A stretch of DNA of 64,000 bases, taken from Kudoa neothunni. Taxonomy: Eukaryota; Animalia; Cnidaria. Positions 12,210 to 54,965 of this stretch are shown piece after piece; within the stretch, counting starts at the first letter, position 1; each line of letters opens with the position of its first letter. Below the pieces are notes generated by a model. The model did no database searches. It saw nothing but the letters and a program-made list of their open reading frames with translations, and had not been told where the DNA came from. Where the stretch lies: NCBI GenBank assembly GCA_964304625.1, contig OZ199840.1, positions 2,210,532-2,274,531 on the forward strand. Reading direction: 5' to 3'. A program made the position numbers and the translations under genes.

Positions 12210-14783
12210 TTATCTGATTCCTTTGCTTGAAGCCACCTTTTTGCGGTAAATAACCAAGTAATAAAATAATCCTGCAGCTACACATAGCATCACTCCAACA
12301 ACAGATCCCCTATTAAAATTGTTAACATCCCAATTCAGCACAACTTTACGATATAATTCCAGCCACTTTCATACTAAATCTATGTTAGCTTATTATAAAA
12401 AATATATTTTTACTGATTAGAGTCTGCTTTTGCAATAACATCAGGTGCTAAATATACCATTTTTTAAACTATACTTCATATAATAATATATTTACTAAAA
12501 AATATATTATTATAGAAATATGAACAAATTATTTACCCTTTGGTTGCAGCACGCGTGACTTTAGTCGTCGATGGAGCTAATTTTCAAATATTAAATAATT
12601 GTAGAAAAAATTTAACTGATGTTTACTAAATATTTATTTATTAATTCATTAATTTACTAAAAATTATTACCTTGTAGTATCTGCCCCAATCTCATTTTCT
12701 ATATATTGTTTATATTTCCAATAAACGTTTAAAAATACCATTTCTCACAATATATATTGTATCTCCATGCATGTATTTTTCAGGTTTAACTACTAATTTG
12801 TACGACTTTCCGGGTGAGACATCTGTGTATACGATTGAATTGCATTTTGTTTCGCAAGTTTTATCAGTCTCAAGGCACGGCTTTCCCACTTTTGTGGGGT
12901 TTTTAAAGTCTGTAATATCAATCAATGTATTGTAACATTTTATTTTTGACATATCTCTCGAAGGGTTCATTTCTCCAACAAAAGTTATGCTCTTGCCATT
13001 AAACGAATGTGTTATGGATAATGTTGCACCATCTAACGAAAAAGTTAAATTGAAAAATAAAACAAAAACTACCTGTTATCAATTCAGTAACTTCTTTATC
13101 ACTCTTTGTGCTATCAAATTTTATTAACAAGGAATATTTTGTCCCGCGCTCCAACCTTTCGAGTTCAACTAGCTCAGAACACATTATTCTGCAAGGGAAT
13201 CTTCCATTGCAATATGCGTCAGTGTAAACGTTTTCCCATTCATTCTTTATTTTAGTTAAGCAAGCAATTTTATCGATGTTCTGAGCAATTGGCTGGAATT
13301 GCATTCTTGTATCCATAATGTTTACATTAATACTTTCAGGTTGGACTGCATCTCCGCCTAAATACTAATCTAAAATATTCATTAAAATAGATCAACTTGT
13401 TTTAAAGTAATATTCAAATGTTGTTTTATCTGATTCATTGTTTTTTGCATCCACTATTATGATATAAGCTGTTCCAGCACTTAAGTTGGAAACGCTTTTA
13501 ATGTCACAAGTAGCGGAGCACGCTGAACCTGAACACAGTGCTCCTGTTTTGGCGCTAACAATTGGATCAAGAGCCTTCCTTACACTAAGTGTACAACTAT
13601 TAGCTACGTCTGTACCAGTCGAGGATTTCATAGTTGATAAATCAAGTGTAAATCCGACGTTTAAAGGATTTGTTGGAGCTATTCCATTATTCACCACTAC
13701 ATAAAAGTTAATCGGGCTCTTTTTTAAATTTAGATACTTGTGTAGGTCTTTGTTTGAGCTTCAGTCTTGGTTACTTCACGAATATAGACGGATGCCTGTT
13801 GATAATTGGCATTAGCATTCATCACAACCTCAGTACATGGATGAATACATGACGTCGAGCTTTTTCCACAGCTTACTACAAATGCATTATTCTGTTCAGT
13901 TTGACCTTTTATTTTAAATTCACAGAGCTTATCGGGTTTCCGATTCAAAATAGTAATAGTAGTTTTTGCTTGATCCTCTTTTTTGGTCACTTTGAAGAAA
14001 AATTCGGAATGTTCGGAAGCCTTTTTTGTGTATTTATTATTGATATAATAAACGAAACTAGGAAAGTAATCTCCACATTCTAATGTATAATCGAACCGGT
14101 AGGTTATTAAACTTGCTTTCAAACTAGACTGCTCTGCTGATTCACAATTTTCAGCATCCCCTGAATTCACAATCTCTAACCCATCTGAGGTCAGTTTGCA
14201 CTGTGTGATAGGGCAAACCATGTTATATGTAAACTTAACATTTTCGTGTTCGTTTCCCACAGTTATAACATGATTCAGAACGTAGCCTAAGTAAAATTAA
14301 GATTATCCAAAAATTAAATTTCATTTTCTAGTATAATTACTTTTTGGTATCACAAAAACCTTTTTGAATGTGGGATTAGATACAGCGTTCCCTGCTGTAT
14401 CGGCAAATTTAACTAAAACAAATGTTGCAGAAAAAGAAGCTACTTTCACCTCCAGATTTTCTGTACTGCATGCTACAACGCATTTACTGTTTGTTTCAGT
14501 TCCTTCACATGAAAAATCCTCGTAAGTCAATTTATTATCTTTGTTGATTTTTGAAATTTGCATGTAACATTTTTTATTAGCATCAAAACCTTTTAGCGAT
14601 ATTTTAATTTTATCTCTATTGTTCGTCCCTTTATTTAAGCCAAACTCAAGGTAGTTTGATTTTGTCGTTGGTGCAGCAATTATCGAATCTAAAACGTATT
14701 CACGTGTGTATATGTAATACTATTTAACAAAAATTACAAAGTATGAATGTTGAAAAAGTTAAAACTGATACAAAAAGTCGCAT
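12210..14783 (-). CDS. Orphan single-pass type I membrane protein with about 6 tandem Cys-containing FN3-like domains
   Basis: Signal peptide MRLFVSVLTFSTFILYSIIA. Large exons (ORFs 14321-14563, 13730-14260, 13392-13697, 12999-13316, 12710-12970) join in frame through phase-1 introns of about 40-54 nt. Repeated C...C-x(3-7)-C-x3-C pattern followed by NLSAGTAY / RLERGTKY / DVSPGKSY. Then a T-rich stalk, TM VAGIISGSVVGVMLCVAAGLFYYLVIY, tail RKKVASSKGIR-stop. Confidence 0.85.
12448..12537 (-). other. Putative [D1,2] stwintron (nested twin intron) 2
   Basis: G(12537) + inner intron GTAAAT...TTTAG (12536-12495, 42 nt) + TAAAT...TTTAG (12494-12448). Inner removal creates donor GTAAAT and a 48-nt outer intron. 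This restores the frame RAATKAPDVIAK. Confidence 0.7.
12577..12671 (-). other. Putative [D1,2] stwintron (nested twin intron) 1
   Basis: G(12671) + inner intron GTAATA...TTTAG (12670-12626, 45 nt) + TAAAC...ATTAG (12625-12577). Inner removal creates donor GTAAAC and a 50-nt outer intron. This restores the frame ENEIGADTTTPSTTK. Confidence 0.7.
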
Positions 14784-15708: not shown

Positions 15709-16725
15709 CTAAATTAATTTCCAATTATAAGTTTTTGCTATACTCTCTAGATAGAACAATCCATAATATCGGTGATAATTCGATGCTATTTCCTTCAGTT
15801 TGGTAAACTTCTCCTCTTTCTTTAAATTTTCAGATGATGAAGGATTGCACATCAGAAAATTTATATCTTGTTCAATAAGGCTCTGAGTCTCTTTTAATTT
15901 TTCAATGAATATTGGTAACCCAGGATGCGCTTGATCAAAACGGCCATAAAAGTGACGATGAAAATTCTCAGCAGCATTAGTTGTTAGATCAGTTCCATCC
16001 ATCAGTCTTTCATACGCGTTCCATGATAAATTTGGAATAAAATTTTTTTCGAAATAGGTGACAAATGAGGATAATTCATTTATCTCAAGATTCTTGGATT
16101 TTTGCTTTAATTTTTCAAATTCGTGTTGTATTTTATCGGGCGGTACAAAGGCTAATGATGTAAAACATTTGACAAACAGGCGAAAATCAGAATCATCGCA
16201 ATATCTAGTTTTCAAACCTAAATTTTGGATTTTCCTCTATATGCATTGTCCAAAATGGAACAAACAATGAAATATGTTGGAATGTTTTGATGCTTTTTTA
16301 AAAGCATTGAAAACAGGACGTTCGAAATCAATTATAATGCTTTTAGGAAATCGAATGTTAGCCTTGTTTTTTAATATCAACAAAACCCATTCATAGCTCT
16401 CCTGGGATTTATCAGCCATCAAGACAAAAATCAACGGAAAAAATCTACCAAATATTTTACCGTGGATTATGTATACTTGATAAAATTCATTAGGGGCCGC
16501 ATTAAATGTGCCATCAGACACCCACGTTTCACAATTATTTAGAAGCAGTATATTATTACCTGTCGTGAATATTATAATTCTATTGGTCGACTTGGACCCA
16601 GAATCATACAAACAAAACTGTTCTTGCCTATGCGTAACAATGTTTTGTTTGCTTAAATCGATTTCCAGGTCTACAATAACATGATTTCTCTTTCGAGCGT
16701 TTTGGATGTTTTTGAAAATATTCAT
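15709..16725 (-). pseudogene. Mutator-like (MULE) transposase with one in-frame stop
   Basis: Motifs WVSDGTF, YQVYIIHG, IIIDFE, CLFHFGQCI and TTNAAENFH. The two ORFs are in frame, separated by a TAG at 16237 (QCI*RKIQ; Trp expected). Confidence 0.9.
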
Positions 16726-21447: not shown

Positions 21448-24400
21448 CTACCTTTGAGCGTTGAAACATTTATTTCTTTGTTCCCGTATTCTAATAGACA
21501 TTCTAGGCTGAGATTTAGATGATGGGTTATCGGCGTATTCTTTGCATGTGCTAGGAGTATAATGTGAAAGAATATCGTTCAACTTGTGATTTGGGTTTGT
21601 AATGTCTAAGATATCATTAGCACTAGCATCTTCATTATCTATGATTGTTTTTGATTTAAGTGCAGCAGCTCTAGGTCTTAACTGGTGTAGGTGCCTTTTT
21701 ACAGTAGTGTCACTAGCATCAAATTTAATTGTGAATAAGCGTTTTCCGTGCGTTGCAACGATTGTACTAGGAACCCAGATGGGTTTAGTATTAGGGTTGT
21801 TTTCAAATTTGAGTGCATAACATGGAGTGCCAGAAGAAAAATTCCCACTACTATCATAAGGGGATTGAGCTGAGTTCCTAGGTGTTTTGTTAGTTTGGCT
21901 GTTAAGCAAACACGTCGTATTGTTGGGTAGTAAAGTAAGGCGTCAATTTCAGTTCTTATTTGCCGACCATTTAAGATTTCACTAGGTGATAATCCGCATT
22001 AGAAAGAGGGATTCTTCTGTACTGTCTAAGGAATTCTTGCAGTGCTGCTTTAGGAGGTAAGGTAGACTTTCGAAGGGATTGTTTAAAGCTTTGAATTAAA
22101 CGTTCAGCAGATCCATTTGTAGCAGGGTAATATGGTGCTCCGGTAAGATGAATGATACCTTTACTTTTGCACCAAGACTGGAATTCTTCCGATTTGAAAG
22201 AAGTGGCATTTTCAGACACTATTGAGAGAGGGTATCCAAAGTGGGCAAACGTTTCCTCTAATAGTGCAATAGTTGCTTTTGAAGACGTAGATGAAGTCAT
22301 TTGGACGCAGGGATATTTTGAATATGCGTCTATTGTAACTAGCCAGTTTGATCCTTTAAAATTGATGGCATGGTCGACATAGACTCTACTCTAGGGTGAT
22401 GTTGGAAGCATCCAAGGGTGTAACAATGGTTTCGAGGGTATTCTTTGATGCTCACAGCAAGAAATGCAGTTTTTACACAGGACTTCAATATCCTCATCAA
22501 TCTTGGGCCAATATACCGCCGATCGAGCCAGTTGTTTCATCTTTACCATCCCTGTCCCTGATGGAGTAAATCCAAAACTTGTTGTCGCATTTTTCTAGGG
22601 ATAACTACTCACATCCCATATAGAAGACAACCGTTGATTGTAGCAAGGAAGGGTTCGATTTTTTTGAACGACTTGGCAATATCCGGAAACTCTCTCGGCC
22701 AACCTTCCCTGGTGAATCGTATGATGGTTGCAATTTCAGGATCACTCTCGGACAGTTTCCTGAGTTTGTTCGGACAATTTTGTGCCACTTGTGAGCTAAT
22801 CGTTTCGACAGCGCATACTACTTCTCTATCATCGCTTTCTTTCTCTTGATCGAATACAATGTCGTTAGAGGTGGGCAATCGACTCAGCACATCAGCGTTA
22901 CCCGTGATTCTGAGTATTTCTATACTCAATAGTCATAGTCGAATTGACTAAGCATTAGTGACCAGCGAGCTAAACGGTTTGCTGCCAGCGATGGTGTCGG
23001 TTTATTTGGGCCTAAAAGCGTCAACAAAGGCTTATGGTCAGTTACTAGGATAAAATTTCGCCCATATAAATATTGATGAAATTTATTCAAGGCGAATACG
23101 ATCGAGAGCGCTTCTTTTTGGACTCGGGAATACTTTTTTTGTGTGTCTGTTAGGATTTTGGATACATTAAGAATAGGTCTTTCATCTCCATTTTGATAAC
23201 GGTGGAAGAGGACAGCTCCAATCCCAACATTTGAAGCATCGCATGAGATACCTATCTTCTCCTTTGGATCGAAATGAGCAAGAATCAAATCCGAGTTGAG
23301 CTTATCTTTGAGGTGATTGAAGGCATGATTTTCTATGGATGTCCATTTCTATTTTGTTGCTTTCCTCGTCAATTCATAGAGTGGATATGCAATTGAAGCC
23401 ACATCAGGTATAAACTTATTGTAGAATTGCATTGAACCTAAAAATGAACGGAGTTCGTGGATATTCCGCGGCGTGGGTAGATCTTTTATTGAATCAACAT
23501 TGGGGCCATGGGATATTCCATCAATGGATATTGTGTGGCCCAGGTATGTGACCTTCGGCTGAGCGAAAAAAACATTTACTACGGTTACAACGCAGTCCTT
23601 TATCTTGAAGACGTTGAAGAAGGTGCTCAAGACTACTCAAATGATCATCTGCATCTTTTCCACTGACTAATAAGTCATCAAGATAGACCACCACTCCTTT
23701 AAGGTCAGATGTAATCGCGTTCATGATTTCTTGAAAGTAGCCAAGCGCGGATTTAATTCCGTAAGGTAAGCGTTTTTGAAGGAAAACTCCACGATGCGTA
23801 CTGAGTGCGAATTTCTTTTGACTTTCCGGGCTAAGTTCAATTTGGTTATAGGCGTCAGCTAAGTTGACCTTCGAGAGATAATAGCTGCCTCCAAGCCGGC
23901 GCATTAAGTCATCAGGCAGAGGACGTGGATGTCGATGGACTTCTAGCTGCTGGTTAATTGTGGCACTGTAATCTCCACAAACTCTAATTTTTCTTTGACC
24001 TGCTTCGTTGGGAGCTCTCCGGATTGGAACGACCGGGGTGCCGTAATCGTTGAAGTCAATGACTTCCCAAATACCTTTGGAAATACCAGCATCATATGCT
24101 TGGTTAAGGTCAATTTGTAGTGCGAACGGTACAGGTCTCGGTTTGCAGAAAATAGCTCTCGAGTCCTCTTTAAACTTGATGTCCAATTTTACTCCTTTTA
24201 AGCAGCCAAGCTCAGGCTTTCCATAAGTCCTTAAATTTATTGTAGATTTGTTTACATTTGTCATTTAATGACTTCTCATTATGGTTTCTTGAAAGAATCA
24301 AGTTGACATTATCATTTACTTTGCTGGTATCAAAAATAAGCTTGTCGATTGATATCGAGTTATCTTTAATTGAAGTCAGACTTATAATGTTCAGATTATC

Positions 24401-25603
24401 TTGTTTTGCGGCATTAAAAACGACGACTGATTTTTTTTTGTGTTAGGGAAAACACATTGAAGCTTGCAGGAGCCGATGGTAGGTAAGGGAAGTGAAGTTG
24501 CCGATATGTATAAATTTTCTGATGGAAGAAGCTTGGGTTTTCCCAGTCGTCTCCAGTGATCCACAGATATAAAATTGTCTTTTGATCTAGTGTCGACCTC
24601 AAACAGTATAGGCTGGTTTTGGACAATCACTTTCATCATTATTTTCGAAAACTTTTTGGAAGTCACTTTCGAGATGCTCTCTATGTTAGTAACACGCTTT
24701 TCTCTCCTTTTAGTAAAACAGTTGGACTCGATATGTTCATCCTTATCACAATATTTACACTTGGAGTCTCTGAAACGGCAATTCTTTCTTTCATGATTAG
24801 TTTTGCCACAACTGACACATGGTCTCATTTTTCTTCGCTGTGGGGATCTTTCAGTGACCAAATTTTTTTTTTGCAACTCTGTGAACCTCCTCGTTCGTTT
24901 CCTCAAGCTGAGCTTTTACTGTTTTTGAGGCTTCTTCTATTTCTGTGGCAATGTTAACCACATCTATAAAGCGAAGTGCTTCAGTCGACTTTTTGAAAAT
25001 CACCCGTAGAACCGCCTCATTATTAATCGCGCTAATGAAGCAGGTTTTCATTGCCTCATCCAAAGGATCTTCAATTGATGGAAAATCGCAGTTGGCTGCT
25101 TTACTTCGAATTCTCGCAGCTAGTTCTTTTGGAGATTCATCCGGGATACGTTTTATTTCGGTGTAGAACTTGAATCTCTCACGAATAACGAACTTTTTGG
25201 GGTCAAATTGTTTGCTCAGGATCTCGTTTATCCCATCGATCTCTAGCGAATTAATATCTTTGGGAGGATCCCACTGTGACGCTTCTGTTTGTATCAGTTC
25301 GTCGTAGGTCTCTTTTGTTTGATTAGTCAAAAAGATTAGAGCTCGTCGTTCACGAGCTATTGTGTTAGCTTTGAAGAATGTGTTGAACCGAGCCCAATAA
25401 GCTTTCCAAGTCTCAGTGGTTGGGTCAAATGACGGGAAGCTGTAGCATGTTTGCAGCGAGGATATCTTAGCCTGGTTCTCCTGCAATTTCTTTAATACAC
25501 TTTGAACTTGGTAGAATTGTGCCTCCATTTGCTTTTGGTGTCGGAGCTCGGATGATTCCATTTGGTCGTGTAGGAGTTTAATGAGTTGTGTGAACTCCGT
25601 CAT
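21448..25603 (-). pseudogene. gag-pol polyprotein of the Gypsy element (frameshifts and stops)
   Basis: Gag with two CCHC knuckles (CVSCGKTNHERKNC, CKYCDKDEHIESNC). Protease FEVDTRS. RT RVCGDY...YLDDLL. RNase H CDASNVGIG...TDHKPL. Integrase IVDAYSKYP...NGSAERL. Broken into at least 8 ORFs. Confidence 0.93.
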
Positions 25604-48189: not shown

Positions 48190-49390
48190 CACTATACTAC
48201 CAAGGAATTAAATTTCAAATAAGGATAATAATTTAATGGATCTATTGATCACTTTGCCATTTGGTAGAGTGATAATAGCCTTTATGGTTTCTCTATCCTT
48301 ATTCTTGAATAGTTGTTTGATAACTCCTATTTTCCATTTGTTGTAGTTCATAGAATCACTAACATGAATAGTATCACTTACTTTGGGAGGTATTTGGTTA
48401 GTTGAACGAGATTGGCTGTGAAGCCTTTCTTTTCGATCACGTAAGTGCAATAAATATTATTTTTTCATGTGTTCCGAAATTGATTAATGATATTTTGACC
48501 TCTATTCCAAATGAGATAAGTTTAGCCTCAGTTTCTCTTCCGTTCGGCTTGTATTCTGAGTCCGTAGTTGCAAACTCATTATCTCTGTATTTACGTTGAT
48601 TCAAGTAAAGATAATCTGATGGTGTAATTATTTGTTGATTTATATCAGTTGAAACATGTATCAATGGCCTTAAGTTTATTATATGTTCCACGTCAATGAC
48701 GATTGTTGAGAACTGACAATTATTTAATTTCTTGAGGCACATCATTTTAGTTAAACATTGTTTTACCTAACCAATTAAGTGCTCGTAAAACCCACCCATC
48801 CAAGGCGAATATTCTGTAATAAATTTCTATTTATTGTTGTTATTTTCCATGAAGGTGTGAATTGGAGGAGATAAAACTTTGGACCTTTCACCCTTTTTCG
48901 TAACTTTAGAAGCCAGATTAAAATTGGTCGCATTGTCTAGACTCAACATTATTAGGCATCCTCTACTTGAAATAAATCTTCTTAAGAAGTTGAGAAAATC
49001 TTCTGTTGACTAACAATTTCCAAATGGATTGCTCGTATGGCGGCACATGTAAATAAACAGATACATGCTTTTTTTTCTGATTGGCTTCGTATATTGTAAA
49101 TGGACCAGCCAAGTCTGCACCAGTATAAGAGAATGGAGGATTCATTGAAACACGATATTGGGGATAATTTGGAAAGATTGGAAGTTTATATTTTTTCGTT
49201 AATGTAATTTTCAAAATTGTCATGTATTTACGGTACGAGAACCAATGTTCTTGAATGCGGTGTCCAAAATCTTAGCAAGAACACATGCGATGTTTGATTT
49301 TTCCCACAATGACCATTCATAATGTGTACGTTATTGATGTAAAGTGTAGTTAGATAACTCTTTTTCGGTAGAAGTTAAATCTTACATCGA
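48190..49390 (-). mobile_element. BEL/Pao retrotransposon integrase fragment
   Basis: HIMNGHCG...RFW (HHCC), PFSYTGADLAGPF, SPWMGGFYEHLIG, INLRPL and C-terminal WKIGVI...RSIKLLSLFE. Confidence 0.88.
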
Positions 49391-51819
49391 AGCATTTCAG
49401 GTTTGATTTGGCCGTTCTTGGTGACATAATTATCATACTAGGATCGTCAGAACTCGAACCTTTGGCTTTATTGTCTCCACCATCATTTATCGTCTTAGGA
49501 CAGCTTGTCGGCGCATGTGTCGAATTTAGATTTAGGAGCCCGAGAGACCTCTCGTACTTCCAGGGCGCCAAATTGTACAGCATGCACCGTATTGATGGAA
49601 GAAGCGTGAATGTAACTCTTGCCACACTCATTGAGTTTTTGGTATAGATCCATTTTTTGTGTAGTTTGGATTGTAGCCCACATAAAGAAGGGTGATAGGG
49701 GATTAGTAATTGCTTACCATCGTCGTCCCTATCTTTTTTCTTAGGGAATATGTGTGCACAAGCCTGTTGATACTCAGTATTGCGAGCTCGAGTCAAATAT
49801 GTTTGAATGAGTCCTTTTTGATAGCCAAGTCTCTCAAATTTCGAGATAAGTAGCCTACAAAACAAACTAGCAATATGAGGAATCGAGTTGCTGCGCAGTA
49901 TTCTCAAAAACTGAGCGTAAATCATCCCCATCTTTACATGGTATGCATGCCAAGTGGATGAGTGGATGTATGTGAATCCATGGAGTAACTTAAAATAAGT
50001 GAAATATTCCGGTTGAGTGGAACCATTATTGTAATAGACACATAAATCTAGATACGTCACAGTTGTACTATATTCACCCTCAATTTGTAAATCCAATGAG
50101 TCGAGCACAACAAATACATCGTCCATATATCGACGGTACATAAGTACACTCGAGTTTGACATTATTTGCTCATCAAATACTAAAAGATATAGATTAGCTA
50201 ACAGGGGTGAGTATGTAGATCCCATGAAAATCCCTTTATTTTGTTTATAAAGGTGACCATTAAATGTGAAATATTGGGATTGTAGCTTCATTTTAAGAAT
50301 CTCTAAGATAAGTTTCTTCTCTTCAAGTGTAAAACTTGCGTATTCTGAGTAGGAATTGTTCGAGTTTATCTAGAAGAACTTTATGATCAAAACCTAAGAA
50401 ACAAATCACAAATGTCTCCAGCATAGAGAACATATTTCTTAAAACGGTCTAGTTTAAGACGTCGTAATTGCTCTATAAGTTGGTTAGAGGATAAAAGAAT
50501 ATGCTCGCAACGGTAGACTTATTTATGAAGCTTTTTCTCCACAAACTTTCCAAGAGTGTTGAAGATACTCTTCCGGGCGCTTATAATAGGTTAGGTCTAC
50601 CCGGAGGTGTTTTATCGTCAATCCATTTGGATGAAGGTTTGTGAATTTTAGGAAGAACATAAAGATAACGGAAGTTTTTAGATTCCCTCGAAACACTTTG
50701 ATGAGATGTCTCATAGACCTTTTGACAGAAATAGTCCTGTTTATCGATCAGATCTCGTCTAATAGGCTCTATTTGGGAGTCATCAATTAATTCAAAATCA
50801 AACTCCGGATTTTTGAGAAGGCTTTTAGCCATTCTATAGTAATGTTCGTGTCCCATTATAACAGTACGTCCACCTTTGTCACTATTAAGAACAAAACATT
50901 TTCGTTGTTGCCTAAAACAAAGGAATTCAGCAATCATCTCCCTGAGGGTGTTGCATTGTTTGGACATTGGAACGACATAGTTTTTCAAGTCTGTGATTTG
51001 ATTTGAATCCATCAAAAACTTTTTCAGGACCTTAGTGCAATAGATATAAGATTTATGATGATTAGGGACATATTTCATTCCCCTAGAAAGAAATAATGCT
51101 AGATTAACACTAATGTCTTGGTCAGAAAGGTTTAAGATGTTGCAATCGTCAATTGTGAGTGATTCATGGATTAATTGTTGGAGTTTTCTCATTATTCTCT
51201 CCGATGGTAAGCTGCCACGGTTAACAATAGAGCGTCAAAGACAATAAAGTAGACAATCTGTTGGATCGTATGGAAAGGCTCTAGTGACTCGATGTGACAT
51301 TGCACAATCATCGGTTGCCAAATGTGTAGCCAAGTAGGACACATTTCGACATTTCTCATTACAAAATTTGCATTGAACTTGGTCACCAGCGACAAATGTG
51401 ACTTGTAAACAAGCTTTGAGATGACTCAACAGACCCTGAATCCTTTCCATTATTGCACCACAAAAACAACATATAATAAAATCGAATCTTGGCCGCTTTT
51501 TCTTAAGATGAGGTTGGATGATTTGTTGACTAAAATCCTCAATTCTCATAGCTTCTCTCACCCTAAATTTAGGAAAAGGATTAAGTTGAACCGTATCATC
51601 ACGATTAATATCGGCCAACTCCTCAACACTGGAAGAAGTATCAGATTGCATTTCAGTCTCCTTGTCACAGTTATTCACTAAATTATCTAAATTATGTAGG
51701 TTAAAAGCAGCAAGGGCAGCTGAGGAGATGTGATTAAAAGATGAGTCATCATGTGTAATAGCTGAGTCCGTTTCAACATCATCTAAGAATTGTTGGGGAT
51801 TTTCATTGCGAATTTTCAT
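49390..51819 (-). pseudogene. Penelope-like reverse transcriptase ORF with N-terminal zinc fingers (copy 2)
   Basis: Acidic N-terminus, then CCFC..H..C and CKFC..H..C fingers. Motifs ILNLS..LSRGMKYVP, SDKGG, LYVLPKIHK, PGRP, AGDICDLF, GIFMGSTYSPLLANLYL, RYMDDVF, TYLDL, thumb YIHSSTWH..QFLRILR and linker IPYHP. No GIY-YIG motif seen. Confidence 0.9.
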
Positions 51820-51840
51820 GGTCTATAACTGGTGACACAT

Positions 51841-53421
51841 TTAATTCAGCATGCTCCACAACTTTAGTGACTTTAGCGACTTTAGCATCATCATGAACAA
51901 TGTCCAAATTATATCTCTTATTAAGAATAGCAATATTCGCGCGCAATTATCTGATGACAAAGCTGCCTGCTCTAGCTTATCCTTATAGCATGAAAGAAAA
52001 AGACAAACGCCCTGTGGCAATGAATGTTTATCGTATGTTGATAATATAACGAGCAAGTCGTTGACCATTGTGGAACTTTTCCAGGGTGTGGTGTGCTTCT
52101 TTTTGTTGTTCTGTTCCGATATCGTTTCACAGCGATATGGATTGCAACCATTCGTAATTTTAAATCTAGCAATCCCTTATTAATTAATGTTTAAAATATC
52201 GGTAACAGAATGGATAATTGAAATTTGTGTTGGGGAGCTAAGATCAACTGCCATTTTATCGGCAAAGTTTTTTAGTCTTATGTGGATGTTCTGATCATTC
52301 ATGTCTTTTTTTGTTTGGCAATTTGACAACCACTTTTAAATCATTACTTTCAATATAAAATCTTGACAGTAGAAAAGTGTGATATAACATTTCGTAGACT
52401 GGAAGTATTAGGGCTTTTGCGAATGAAAAGGGCCTCTTCAGACAGTCGGAGATTGTCGTTCTTTTTTTATAAGGAATAACTCGCCCAGACTCTCATTTAA
52501 ATGATGATCCAATGCCATCAATAAAACCGGTAAAATTTGGTTTGGTAGAATCTAAATTGATAATATATGATTTTTTCAATATTGTTACGGATTTTTTCTA
52601 ATGAATATTGACGGGCTTTTTCAATTTTATGAATGTTATTTGATTTATTCCTAGAGTTAACATTGTTCTCGTGGCGTTGTCTTTATTCGAACGTTTAATT
52701 TGTTGCGTTTTTACCGACAATATTATTTGTTACATCTTTAGATGTAGATTTATTGTCGCCCTTTTTTGTTTCAACCTTTTTAACGTTCGTTTTTTTGAAC
52801 AACTTTTTTAGTTGATTGTTTTGTTTTGGAAACGTTTGTTATTGTTTCGTTTTTTATGAACAATGCCATTGAAGGAAGAACGGTTAATCTATAAAAAGGA
52901 TTAGTATTTGTGTAATTAATTTGATGCCGTTGATAGTTGTTATAGTTGTTGCGTAAAGCAACAGGTTGATCAATGAATTGTGGACTAGTTGGCCAGCTTT
53001 GAGTAAGTTGGAAACCAAAACTAGTGTTTGGCATTGGACAAGTGTTATGTGAAATTTGATAGCCAATAGCTGGTATCATTGGGTATTGGAATGATTGGTT
53101 TTGAGCAGCATTACACCAATTAAGAGGTGTAATAGCTGCCCCATTATACAGGTTTTGTGGAGTGGAATTGACAGTAGAGTGAATCAATGATCCAGGCCAC
53201 ATCAATTGATGATCTAATGCATCCGTTGTAGCTGCACGAATCATTGCGGAAGTAAGTTTAGGTTTTTTCAATGAATTGTTCCGAGTTGTCATAGCGGATC
53301 CTCCAACGTGTCGTAAGATCAAAACACTTTGAGAAATGAAAGTTGAACTCTTACGTGTCGTTTCTTTCAAAACATTTAGAGTTTGTGTCAAACAGTGCGA
53401 AAAAGTTGCTTGTATGGCCAA
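51841..53421 (-). pseudogene. PLE-associated ORF1 domain protein, copy B (disrupted)
   Basis: Paralog of 53725-54965: PMIPAIGYQI, KFTGFIDGIGSSFK, DNLRLSEE, LKLRMVAIHIAVKRYRNRTT, MVNDLLVILSTYD. Confidence 0.7.
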
Positions 53422-53724
53422 AGGGGTTAGCGGAGGTTATCATAAATAGAAACCTCTTTATTATTTTTAGTCATAAACTGGGAAATGTGTGGGTGGACTC
53501 AACAACCACATTATCGTCATCTGTTTTTTCAGGATTTTCCAATGCAGATTCGAATTGCTCATTTGCCGATTCAACCACTTGAACACCATTGTCGCAGCTT
53601 TGATTTTGTGAGGCACGGTCTGTATTAGTATTCGGACTCGTGCACGGCAGTTGTGTGACCGGGAATCTATCCGACGCCTCATGCTCAGAGGTATCATCAC
53701 CATTCACAGAATAGAACCTTTGGT

Positions 53725-54965
53725 TTACAACGGTGATGCTAGCATGTAAATCTGTAAATCGTCGGACAGCTTATCCACCTCGGCAAAGTTATGTTTATAA
53801 TAATCAAGAAATAGGCGGATCCCTTCAGACAGAGCATGGTCATCATATGTAGTGAGGATGACCAGCAAATCATTCACATTCACCATTGTCGAAATACTCC
53901 AAGGGGAACTTCGCTGTGTAGTATGGTTGCGATAACGTTTTAACGCAATGTGTATTGCCACCAATCGCACTTTAAAGTCGAAGTGTTCCTTCCCCAACAG
54001 AATTAGCGCGTCCATAATATAGCCAATAATCGCCAACTCAGTTGAGTCACTCAAGTCATTTGCAAACTTCTTTATTCTTTGGTGGAGTATCTCATTACCA
54101 GTGCTTCGTCCATTAGGAAGTTTCACAACCATGTTCAGCCCATTACTCTCCAAATAAAACCTTCTTAACAGATGTGTATGGAAGAGCATTTCAAACATTG
54201 GCGTAATAAGCTTTTTCGCTACGGTGAATCCCTCATCAGTCAGGCGTAGGTTGTCGTTTGACTTAACGGCGAACTTCTCACCCAGACTGTATTTATTGTT
54301 CACCAGGTTTTCGTACCTTGTGCACATGGCTCGACATTTGAATGACGAGCCGATGCCATCTATAAAGCCAGTGAATTTTCTTTTTGTAACGTCTAAGACC
54401 ACAACGTTTTCATCATGGATATTTCTTTGTATTTTCGCTAATGCGAATCGTTTAGCGTTGACAATTTTAATTCTCGAGTTCGCATGCGCCGTATCTTTTA
54501 CATCCGAAGACTTTTTCATGGTGGGTTTGTCGATAGCAAAGTTAACTCTTTTTATTTGGAGGTAGAGCAGCCATATCCTTGCCATTAGTTTTTGGTTTCG
54601 CACCCACTTTCTTTCCATTCCTTTGAGGCTTTTTATTTTGGGTGGAAATCGTTTTCCTTTGATTGATGCTTTGGATAGGCTGCCAACTTTGTAATTGTTT
54701 AGGATTTCGTTTCTGGTGACCTTTAAAAGGACGTTTTTTAAAACGATTAATCCGTTTACTTCTTGACATATTTCCGACATATGGACCAGGCGGTCCGATT
54801 ATAATCCCTACTTTTTTGCTCGATTTGCATGTAAGGCATATTTTGGTTCGAGACGACCTGTTGGTACCCTACACTCGAAATCGGCAATGGACCAGTTGGT
54901 ATAACTTGATATCCAATGGATGGGATAGGAGAGTATCCATATCCAAAGTAGTTACCAATGTGTGT
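53725..54965 (-). CDS. PLE-associated ORF1 domain protein, copy A (unknown function, probably frameshifted near the N-terminus)
   Basis: 351-aa ORF 53725-54780 plus an upstream PIPSIGYQV segment and a basic overlapping frame (54542-54769). Co-oriented with and upstream of the RT. Confidence 0.6.

Follow-up and report, generated by a model that had tools for sequence, protein, structure and literature searches.

How can a gene be read through to its transmembrane exon when two of its introns, removed in the ordinary way from the visible GT, each leave an additional G in the message and lead to an early stop? This question is raised by a minus-strand gene within a window of 64,000 nucleotides from the genome of Kudoa neothunni, a fish parasite (Myxozoa, Cnidaria). 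An earlier note had proposed that both introns are [D1,2] stwintrons (spliceosomal twin introns), in which an internal intron splits the donor of an external one between its first and second base. Such a layout is so far described only in fungi, and we found no case outside fungi in the stwintron literature searched. We therefore examined the locus, its paralogues and a distantly related gene family, in all at least 56 related surface-protein genes that each appear to carry two such composites, as judged from comparison of DNA sequences alone.

Sequence layout of the composite introns

The observation made in the earlier note is confirmed to the base. The two microexons that precede the 94- and 89-nt introns are each followed by G/GT (a slash marks the splice site), and each long intron contains an internal TTTAG/TAAA. 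Table 1 lists the features of the gene. The neighbouring ordinary introns are all 40 nt. Canonical single-step splicing gives the stop AGC TCC ATC GAC GAC TAA, while dropping one G at each donor reads NEIGADTTTPSTTKVTRAATKAPDVIAK and continues into the transmembrane (TM) exon. The word TTTAGTAAA occurs 8 times in the window against 3.6 expected, and 3 of the 8 lie in these two introns. Motifs resembling TTAAT or CTAAC lie 10–17 nt before the acceptors, in sequence that is about 80% A+T and where such motifs are not informative as branch points.

Table 1. Features of the minus-strand gene (positions in the window; changes by codon position are given for first/second/third positions)
Feature	Position	Strand	Description	Supporting observations
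Whole gene	12210..14783	-	11 exons: signal peptide, five Cys-containing ectodomain exons, two stalk microexons, two short exons, terminal exon with TM helix and short tail	Reading of the sequence and its open reading frames; no Pfam family found with the large exons
Exon E6	12739..13032	-	Last ectodomain exon, 294 nt, leaves phase 1	Open frame; 14 paralogues at 54-73% identity
Intron i6	12699..12738	-	Ordinary 40-nt GT-AG intron
Microexon E7	12672..12698	-	27 nt (..ENEIGADTT)	27 nt in 13 of 14 paralogues, 28 nt in the pseudogene L014; coding status weaker than for E8, changes by codon position 5/14/10
Left-over G, A	12671..12671	-	Proposed first base of external donor A	Invariant in 14/14 paralogues while the base before it varies (A, G or C)
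Internal intron A	12626..12670	-	45 nt, GTAATA...TTTAG; visible GT at 12670-12669
Rest of external intron A	12577..12625	-	TAAACA...ATTAG; with G 12671 a 50-nt GTAAAC...AG intron	Second half 43-50 nt in all paralogues
Microexon E8	12538..12576	-	39 nt (..PSTTKVTRAATK)	39 nt in all 14 paralogues; third-position excess of changes (10/7/20) shows it is coding in this frame
Left-over G, B	12537..12537	-	Proposed first base of external donor B	Invariant in 14/14 paralogues while the base before it varies (G or A)
Internal intron B	12495..12536	-	42 nt here, 94-116 nt in the paralogues; visible GT at 12536-12535
Rest of external intron B	12448..12494	-	TAAATA...TTTAG; with G 12537 a 48-nt intron	47-51 nt in all paralogues, although the first half varies from 42 to 116 nt
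Exon E9	12414..12447	-	34 nt	Changes by codon position 4/3/14
Exon E10	12350..12373	-	24 nt, flanked by ordinary 40-nt introns 12413-12374 and 12349-12310	Changes by codon position 2/1/10
Exon E11	12210..12309	-	Terminal exon: TM helix (GSVVGVMLCVAAGLFYYLVIY), basic tail and stop

Conservation across two gene families

All 14 paralogues (family 1) keep G/GTA, an internal TAG/TA and a second half of 43–51 nt at both introns. In 13 of these 14 genes, only dropping one G at each donor links E6, E7, E8 and E9 to the TM exon, and single-step splicing stops early in all 14. A distantly related family of 42 genes (family 2) has the same pair of composites, recognized by a parser in 37 genes and by eye in the other five, and here single-step splicing puts a stop inside the next exon in 76 of 79 composites. 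The exons between and after the composites are coding in the frame that results from dropping the G. In the 81-nt exon of family 2 (E81), as in E8, E9 and E10, third-position changes are in excess (25/17/39), and the peptides are conserved, for example NIRSEYANIVVDDIVQKVIEKVEK/ENHNFDAAKNSYSS. We note however that the upstream microexons, E7 and its 24-nt family-2 counterpart E24, show no third-position bias, and that the first composite could therefore lie inside one long ordinary intron if that microexon is never used.

Among 41 non-redundant composites, 38 have TAG/TA at a usable position, against 2.0 expected from shuffled sequences and 0 on the reverse complement, and this holds at both positions in the gene (20/22 and 18/19). 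In the 107 composites from which sequence logos were derived, the internal units begin GTA (93%) and end TAG (99%), and 92 of them are 38–57 nt long, the rest 80–128 nt. The external units are 38–62 nt, and the published median intron of this genome is 49 bp. The inner junction reads TTTAG/T A(95%) A(83%) A(76%) t t, and the rebuilt donor G+TAAAtt matches the ordinary donors of the same genes, GT A(93%) A(71%) .. t t. Within family 1 the sequence after the internal AG varies among TAAAT, TAGGA, TATGT, TAAAC and TGATA, and each rebuilds a GT donor. The base after the internal AG is T in all composites and never G, but since the parser required GGT and AG/T, the 100% values for those three bases are circular, whereas the logos of the flanking positions and the shuffle test are not. 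Moreover, the paralogues share ancestry and the counts are not independent events. A splice-path parser over-spliced without an intron penalty and under-spliced with a high one, and paths with canonical sites only could be found in single genes, but these used different ad hoc sites in each paralogue. We therefore relied on the template shared by all genes and on tests that do not depend on the parser.

No sequence-similar composites at non-homologous positions in unrelated genes were found in the searches that were made. A strict whole-genome pattern gave 19 hits against 42 for its control. Eight of the 19 lie in the superfamily, and of the 13 hits outside family 1 two were real and led to family 2, while the 11 hits outside the superfamily were false or unconvincing, including a 51-nt intron followed by exon (locus L043) and a Kunitz-domain exon (locus L049). 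Searches with DNA and with the TM exon found only family members. Frame shifts of +1 in ORC5 (locus L037) lie inside continuous coding sequence and not at introns, so they are unrelated and look like a pseudogene. Exon E6, searched against 1.84 billion protein representatives, gave only two low-complexity repeat proteins, and a family-2 exon searched against a 5.8-billion protein set gave nothing, such that no homologue was found in these libraries that could show a mature junction. A search with the Rfam SL1 model gave no hit, nor did its controls, so it is uninformative. The published work states that the host RNA-seq holds too few Kudoa reads.

A two-step splicing model and its alternatives

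We suggest that both long introns are genuine [D1,2] stwintrons inherited through gene duplication, a reading to which we assign a probability of roughly 0.75. In this model the spliceosome pairs the visible GTA donor with the nearest downstream TAG and removes the internal intron, which is 38–57 nt in most genes and up to 128 nt in some. The left-over G would then abut TAAA and form a consensus GTAAA donor, which would pair with the final acceptor 38–62 nt further on, so that the external intron is removed together with the G. The mature junctions would then read ACTACAA/CTCCATCG and ACCAAAG/CACCTGAT, and the intermediates ACAAG/TAAACATC and AAAGG/TAAATATA. Only this route gives an mRNA that reads both microexons and the transmembrane exon in frame using GT-AG ends. 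The layout most likely arose once, or twice by duplication of a phase-1/phase-1 stalk unit, in an ancestor of a lineage-specific surface-protein superfamily of K. neothunni, and was then passed on to at least 56 genes. A comparison of the first and second internal introns of the same gene, made with regard to origin by duplication, gave a score of 0.24, with 0.18 +/- 0.09 for shuffles. In this view purifying selection holds the layout in place, because any change of the G, of the internal AG or of the following T would break the gene. The analysis establishes the sequence layout, its consequences for the reading frame and its conservation, while the order of splicing, the existence of the intermediate and the mature junctions in RNA are inferred.

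The interpretation offered in the earlier note is only partly supported. The [D1,2] layout in an animal gene, conserved across deep paralogue divergence, is supported. Its further inference, that a strict short-intron spliceosome removes introns of about 90 nt in two obligatory steps, possibly genome-wide, is not supported, since internal introns of 80–128 nt occur within these same composites, seven introns of 72–135 nt sampled in kinase genes read correctly against kinase motifs as ordinary one-step GT-AG introns, and the strict whole-genome pattern showed no excess over its control. Its suggestion that the layout could tune the stalk length of a surface protein is possible, since skipping either or both microexons is in frame, but nothing shows it.

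Other readings are not excluded but appear unlikely. The same mature mRNA and frames would result if the spliceosome cut one base upstream of the visible GT and removed the whole 83–167 nt at once as a GG-AG intron. Non-GT donors are tolerated in appendicularian tunicates, myxozoan splice signals are reduced to GTa and AG, and the one-step kinase introns indicate that length alone does not force two steps. However, such one-step removal does not explain why TAG/TA(A, G or T) is kept 38–62 nt from the 3′ end in 38 of 41 non-redundant composites, why length changes are confined to the first half, or why the bases after the internal AG copy the donor consensus. It would also require a GG to be preferred over a perfect adjacent GTA donor, and three of the seven kinase introns keep the G before GT as a coding base. 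About as unlikely is that the microexons are always or mostly skipped, E6 being joined straight to E9 (12739 to 12447), with the composites as relics or serving only a minor isoform. Skipping E7, E8 or both is in frame in all intact genes, because the exon lengths of 27, 39, 24 and 81 nt are multiples of 3 and the exons are phase 1 to phase 1, E7 and E24 lack third-position bias, and in fungi a donor-disrupted stwintron takes part in exon skipping (PMC6616335). Against this, exon lengths are held fixed while the introns change length, E8 and E81 show coding-type substitution patterns and conserved peptides, the exons are more conserved than the flanking intron parts (0.66–0.74 against 0.44–0.50), and the splice signals of both composites are conserved in 56 genes.

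The possibility that the extra Gs are assembly errors, which the earlier note had named as grounds for rejection, or that the genes are pseudogenes, is contradicted by the data. GG and GGG runs are a classic site of indel error, and one copy (L014) is a pseudogene with other frameshifts. However, the same extra G is seen at 112 separate loci on three chromosomes, the base before it varies while the G does not, the frames are otherwise intact with a third-position excess of changes, and the published assembly (40.2 Mb in three chromosomes, with a mitochondrial contig of 18,219 bp) is HiFi-based with a QV of 48.5.

Relation to known systems

The closest systems are the [D1,2] stwintrons of filamentous ascomycetes described by Flipphi, Fekete and co-workers (PMC5639578, PMC12403724, PMC6616335). 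There too an internal U2-type intron splits the external donor between G and T, both units have canonical ends and the normal size for the host, removal must go inside out, single-step removal shifts the frame, and short introns imply intron definition. The present composites differ in that the host is a myxozoan animal, that they come in adjacent pairs flanking symmetric microexons, and that they sit at homologous positions in at least 56 paralogues, consistent with inheritance by gene duplication, whereas the sister stwintrons of Hypoxylaceae spread to new positions in unrelated genes. The intermediate has been proven by RT-PCR in the fungal cases and is inferred from sequence alone here.

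In recursive splicing at ratchet points of long Drosophila and vertebrate introns, one intervening sequence is likewise removed stepwise with a donor regenerated after the first step. Ratchet points, however, read AG/GTAAGT, and the regenerated donor uses the GT that follows the AG, so that the same exon end is used twice. Here the internal site is AG/TA and the G is left behind upstream, the frames require that this one extra base be removed, the two steps would cut one base apart, and the introns are about 90–170 nt rather than tens of kilobases. Nested introns and intrasplicing in mammals (dystrophin, protein 4.1R) also have an intron inside an intron that is removed first, but there the inner intron does not interrupt a splice signal, so the order is not obligatory for forming the outer donor. 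An aligner would report the Kudoa junctions as GG-AG introns, recalling the non-canonical G*-AG introns of appendicularians, which are taken to be removed in one step and are not known to have a conserved internal acceptor-donor junction.

Implications for the surface-protein family

The two-step removal might be used as a switch and not be just inherited baggage, although we regard this as unlikely on present evidence. After the first step alone, the transcript would meet a stop inside the retained external intron in 83 of 107 composites and would encode a soluble, anchor-less ectodomain, with the second step giving the membrane-anchored form. In addition, the rebuilt donor could pair with a later acceptor and skip a symmetric microexon, as shown for a fungal stwintron. 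This would let the parasite vary both the anchoring and the stalk length of a large variant surface-protein family at the level of splicing.

If borne out at the level of RNA, these would be the first stwintrons outside fungi, and in an animal, with about 112 copies kept through long divergence of a gene family, which gives a natural system of many diverged copies in which to ask how such composites arise and why they persist. It would show that obligatory inside-out splicing of a split donor is not a fungal peculiarity but can arise wherever short introns are recognized by intron definition, and that myxozoan splice sites pair across introns. It would also show that gene predictors that allow only GT-AG or GC-AG introns (the published annotation used protein hints only) will break or truncate every member of what may be the main surface-protein family of this parasite.

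Gene structure and reading frame

The minus strand of the window carries an 11-exon gene that encodes a signal peptide and five Cys-containing ectodomain exons of about 290-560 nt, followed by two microexons (E7 and E8), two short exons (E9 and E10) and a terminal exon (E11) with a transmembrane (TM) helix and a basic tail. Its position, and those of the other features discussed here, are given in the table below. Exons were searched one by one, and none matched a Pfam family. The ordinary introns are 39-54 nt, and the three nearest to the microexons are each exactly 40 nt. In contrast, the intervening sequences after E7 (intron A) and E8 (intron B) are 95 and 90 nt counted from the first G, and each begins GGTA.

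The observation made in the earlier note holds, in that every coordinate and length it gave for this arrangement is right. Splicing at the visible GT reads ...ACA AGC TCC ATC GAC GAC TAA, whereas leaving out one G at each donor reads NEIGADTTTPSTTKVTRAATKAPDVIAKADSNHMKVAGIISGSVVGVMLCVAAGLFYYLVIYRKKVASSKGIR-stop. Each long intron contains an internal TTTAG/TAAA (the slash marks the junction), which splits intron A into 45 + 50 nt and intron B into 42 + 48 nt, where the second figure counts the left-over G. A third TTTAG/TAAA lies only 13 nt after the donor of intron A. It is too close to serve as an acceptor and is not conserved in the paralogues, suggesting that it is probably due to chance.

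Coordinates of the gene, its 3' exons and other features noted in the window and elsewhere in the assembly
Feature	Sequence	Position	Strand	Description
Surface-protein gene	window	14783-12210	minus	11 exons
E7	window	12698-12672	minus	microexon, 27 nt
E8	window	12576-12538	minus	microexon, 39 nt
E9	window	12447-12414	minus	short exon, 34 nt
E10	window	12373-12350	minus	short exon, 24 nt
E11	window	12309-12210	minus	terminal exon
Third TTTAG/TAAA	window	12653-12661	minus	in intron A
MULE-type transposase	window	15709-16725	minus	Pfam MULE, E = 1e-10; split over two adjacent ORFs by a stop
Reverse-transcriptase ORFs	window	23521-25603 and 49350-54780	minus	RVT_1; in the two G+C-richer stretches of the window
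L085	contig 3	2274963-2275759	minus	family-2 gene with both composites, about 430-1230 bases beyond the window's end
L037	contig 3	1128501-1132500	plus	ORC5-like reading frame in bases 1-1300
L049	contig 3	9326264-9327064	minus	Kunitz/BPTI-like exon
L014	contig 2	2618780-2622079		family-1 pseudogene
Mitochondrial genome (L035, L036)	contig 4			18,219 bp

Genomic context

The assembly has 40,260,978 bases in four contigs, the fourth of which is the mitochondrial genome. Its COX1 is extremely divergent, with eight in-frame TGA codons (Trp) and AGR at conserved Arg positions (translation table 4), and ARAGORN finds no tRNA gene. Its GC content is 43%, against about 27-30% in the nuclear DNA. The published description of Kudoa neothunni, reassembled from Thunnus albacares HiFi reads (Weber et al. 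2025, PMC12239612), reports 40.2 Mb, three chromosomes, a mitochondrial contig of 18,219 bp, a genomic GC of 30.4%, a median intron of 49 bp and QV 48.5, and states that the host RNA-seq held too few Kudoa reads for transcript-based annotation. Cytosolic HSC70 has only metazoan best hits, at no more than 78% identity. The gene therefore belongs to a myxozoan cnidarian, and its description in the earlier note as an animal gene is correct.

A MULE-type transposase lies just upstream of the surface-protein gene, reverse-transcriptase ORFs are found further along, and most of the window apart from the studied gene looks like transposable-element sequence. Elsewhere, all four HSP70-family genes (cytosolic, BiP-like, mitochondrial-like and HSP110-like; L031-L034) are single uninterrupted ORFs, in a genome where most genes have many introns. 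The ORC5-like reading frame of L037 changes frame several times inside continuous coding-looking sequence with no intron at the shift points. It looks like a decaying intronless copy and is unrelated to the nested introns.

Conservation among paralogues of the gene

The genome holds 13 further copies of this gene (family 1), in two clusters on contig 2, at 54-73% protein identity in exon E6. E7 is 27 nt in 13 of the 14 genes, and E8, E9 and E10 have the same lengths in all 14. The exception is L014, a recent pseudogene inside the tandem cluster, which has several frameshifts (a 28-nt E7 and a broken TM exon) but still keeps both composite layouts. All 14 genes keep G/GTA at both donors and an internal AG/T(A/G) whose distance to the 3' end is 43-50 nt in intron A and 47-51 nt in intron B. 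The first half of intron B is 42 nt here but 94-116 nt in the others, so that length change is confined to the part before the internal junction. The base before the left-over G varies (A/G/C at the first donor and G/A at the second), while the G never does. Similarly, the bases after the internal AG vary (TAAAC, TAATC, TGATA, TAAAT, TAGGA, TATGT and TAAGT), yet every variant makes a GT donor once the G is put in front.

In 13 genes, only the model that drops both Gs reads both microexons into the TM exon. Changes by codon position are 10/7/20 in E8, 4/3/14 in E9 and 2/1/10 in E10, so these exons are translated in that frame. The corresponding figures for E7 are 5/14/10, which is uninformative.

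A second, larger gene family

We next ran a strict whole-genome pattern, GGTA N34-50 TTTAGTAA N34-46 TTAG, which gave 19 hits against 42 for the reversed control. Six hits were family 1. One other (L049), a Kunitz/BPTI-like exon (..CKTFNYNGCGGSFNRYESDEECYLYCFSN), matched by chance, which shows how easily A+T-rich coding sequence mimics splice signals here. Two hits (L038 on contig 1 and L050 on contig 3) proved to be paralogues of each other. In both, canonical splicing gives an immediate stop while dropping the G gives the conserved ..AAKN.. peptide, and their alignment showed a second composite one exon upstream. Their TM exon finds 51 places on all three chromosomes, of which 40 were retrieved. 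Using a splice-path parser that allows ordinary introns up to 75 nt and [D1,2] composites, we find a single template in 37 of 42 loci: E24, a composite of about 45+42, E81, a composite of about 43+46 or 56, E46 or E37, i40, E18, i40 and E97 (the TM exon). The other five loci carry the second composite on inspection. The peptides read in this way are plainly homologous across the family (family 2).

The tail of the last ectodomain exon of family 2 (C..C..I..GLS..KDY.L.VK) resembles that of family-1 E6, and the order and phases of the 3' exons are the same. We therefore infer that the two families form one superfamily with homologous composites. Its members are scattered over all three chromosomes, often in tandem or inverted near-identical pairs (L009/L010, L051/L052 and L072/L073), and one family-2 gene (L085) lies just outside the window.

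Tests independent of the splice-path parser

In total 107 composites were collected, of which 41 are non-redundant at less than 25% shared 8-mers. Of these, 38 have TAG/TA at a position that leaves at least 35 nt before it and 38-62 nt after it, whereas shuffles predict 2.0 and the reverse complements give 0. Both composite positions show the feature (20/22 and 18/19). At the inner junction, position -3 is T in 98-99% and positions -4 and -5 are T in about 80-90%, while positions +2, +3 and +4 are A in 95%, 83% and 76%. None of these positions was required by the parser, although its scoring did favour T at -3 and A at +2 and +3 where several AG/T sites competed. Since the ordinary donors of the same genes read GT A(93%) A(71%). 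t t, the junction looks like an acceptor fused to a donor that lacks its G. Canonical single-step splicing puts a stop inside the next exon in 76 of 79 family-2 composites, and E81 changes 25/17/39 by codon position. Exons are also more alike between paralogues (0.66 for E24 and 0.74 for E81) than the adjacent intron parts (0.44-0.50).

Occurrence outside the superfamily

The earlier note had suggested that a strict short-intron spliceosome might remove introns of about 90 nt in two steps across the genome. On the evidence gathered this is not supported. Within the composites themselves 15 internal introns are 80-128 nt, so on the model's own terms the machinery removes such lengths in one step. 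Using kinase genes as an unrelated control, we read 14 exon gaps against the kinase motifs. Seven introns of 72-135 nt (at loci L091, L092 and L094-L098) are ordinary GT-AG introns that give the expected motif junctions, for example DYDFK/ADIWSLG, SIQLA/DFGVS and LEICRNR/SLMELHKRR, and in three of them a G before the GT is a coding base that must be kept. The strict pattern shows no excess outside the superfamily; however, it would catch only a fifth or less of the true cases, so a few further genes cannot be excluded, and the survey outside the superfamily is small.

Interpretation

The interpretation offered in the earlier note is thus supported in part: nested [D1,2] introns in an animal gene remain the best reading, but not their extension to the whole genome. 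In the fungal [D1,2] stwintron scheme (PMC5639578, PMC6616335), the internal intron would go first, by pairing of the visible donor with the nearest acceptor. The left-over G would then join T to make the external donor, and the external intron would go second. Here the layout, the frames and the conservation are demonstrated from DNA sequence, whereas the order of events and the intermediate are inferred. In the literature searched, papers that use the word "stwintron" either describe fungal cases or merely mention or cite them. A 2026 study of myxozoan introns (PMC13644364) reports reduced signals (GTa and AG, with a weak T at +6 in Kudoa) and mentions neither nested nor non-canonical introns, and the Kudoa genome paper (PMC12239612) does not treat splicing beyond lengths.

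One-step GG-AG splicing would give the same mRNA but leaves the conserved internal junction unexplained. Constant skipping of the microexons is contradicted by their fixed lengths and by the coding-type substitutions in E8 and E81, although it remains possible for E7 and E24. Assembly error and pseudogenes are excluded by 112 loci and otherwise intact frames.

Two observations leave room for a regulatory use, for which we found no evidence here. Transcripts that stop after the first step would meet a stop inside the retained part in 83 of 107 cases. Moreover, both flanked microexons are phase-1 symmetric, so skipping them keeps the frame, and a fungal donor-disrupted stwintron mediates exon skipping (PMC6616335). 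However, the composites need not have a function of their own, and most likely persist because any change at the G, the internal AG or the T would be lethal to the gene.
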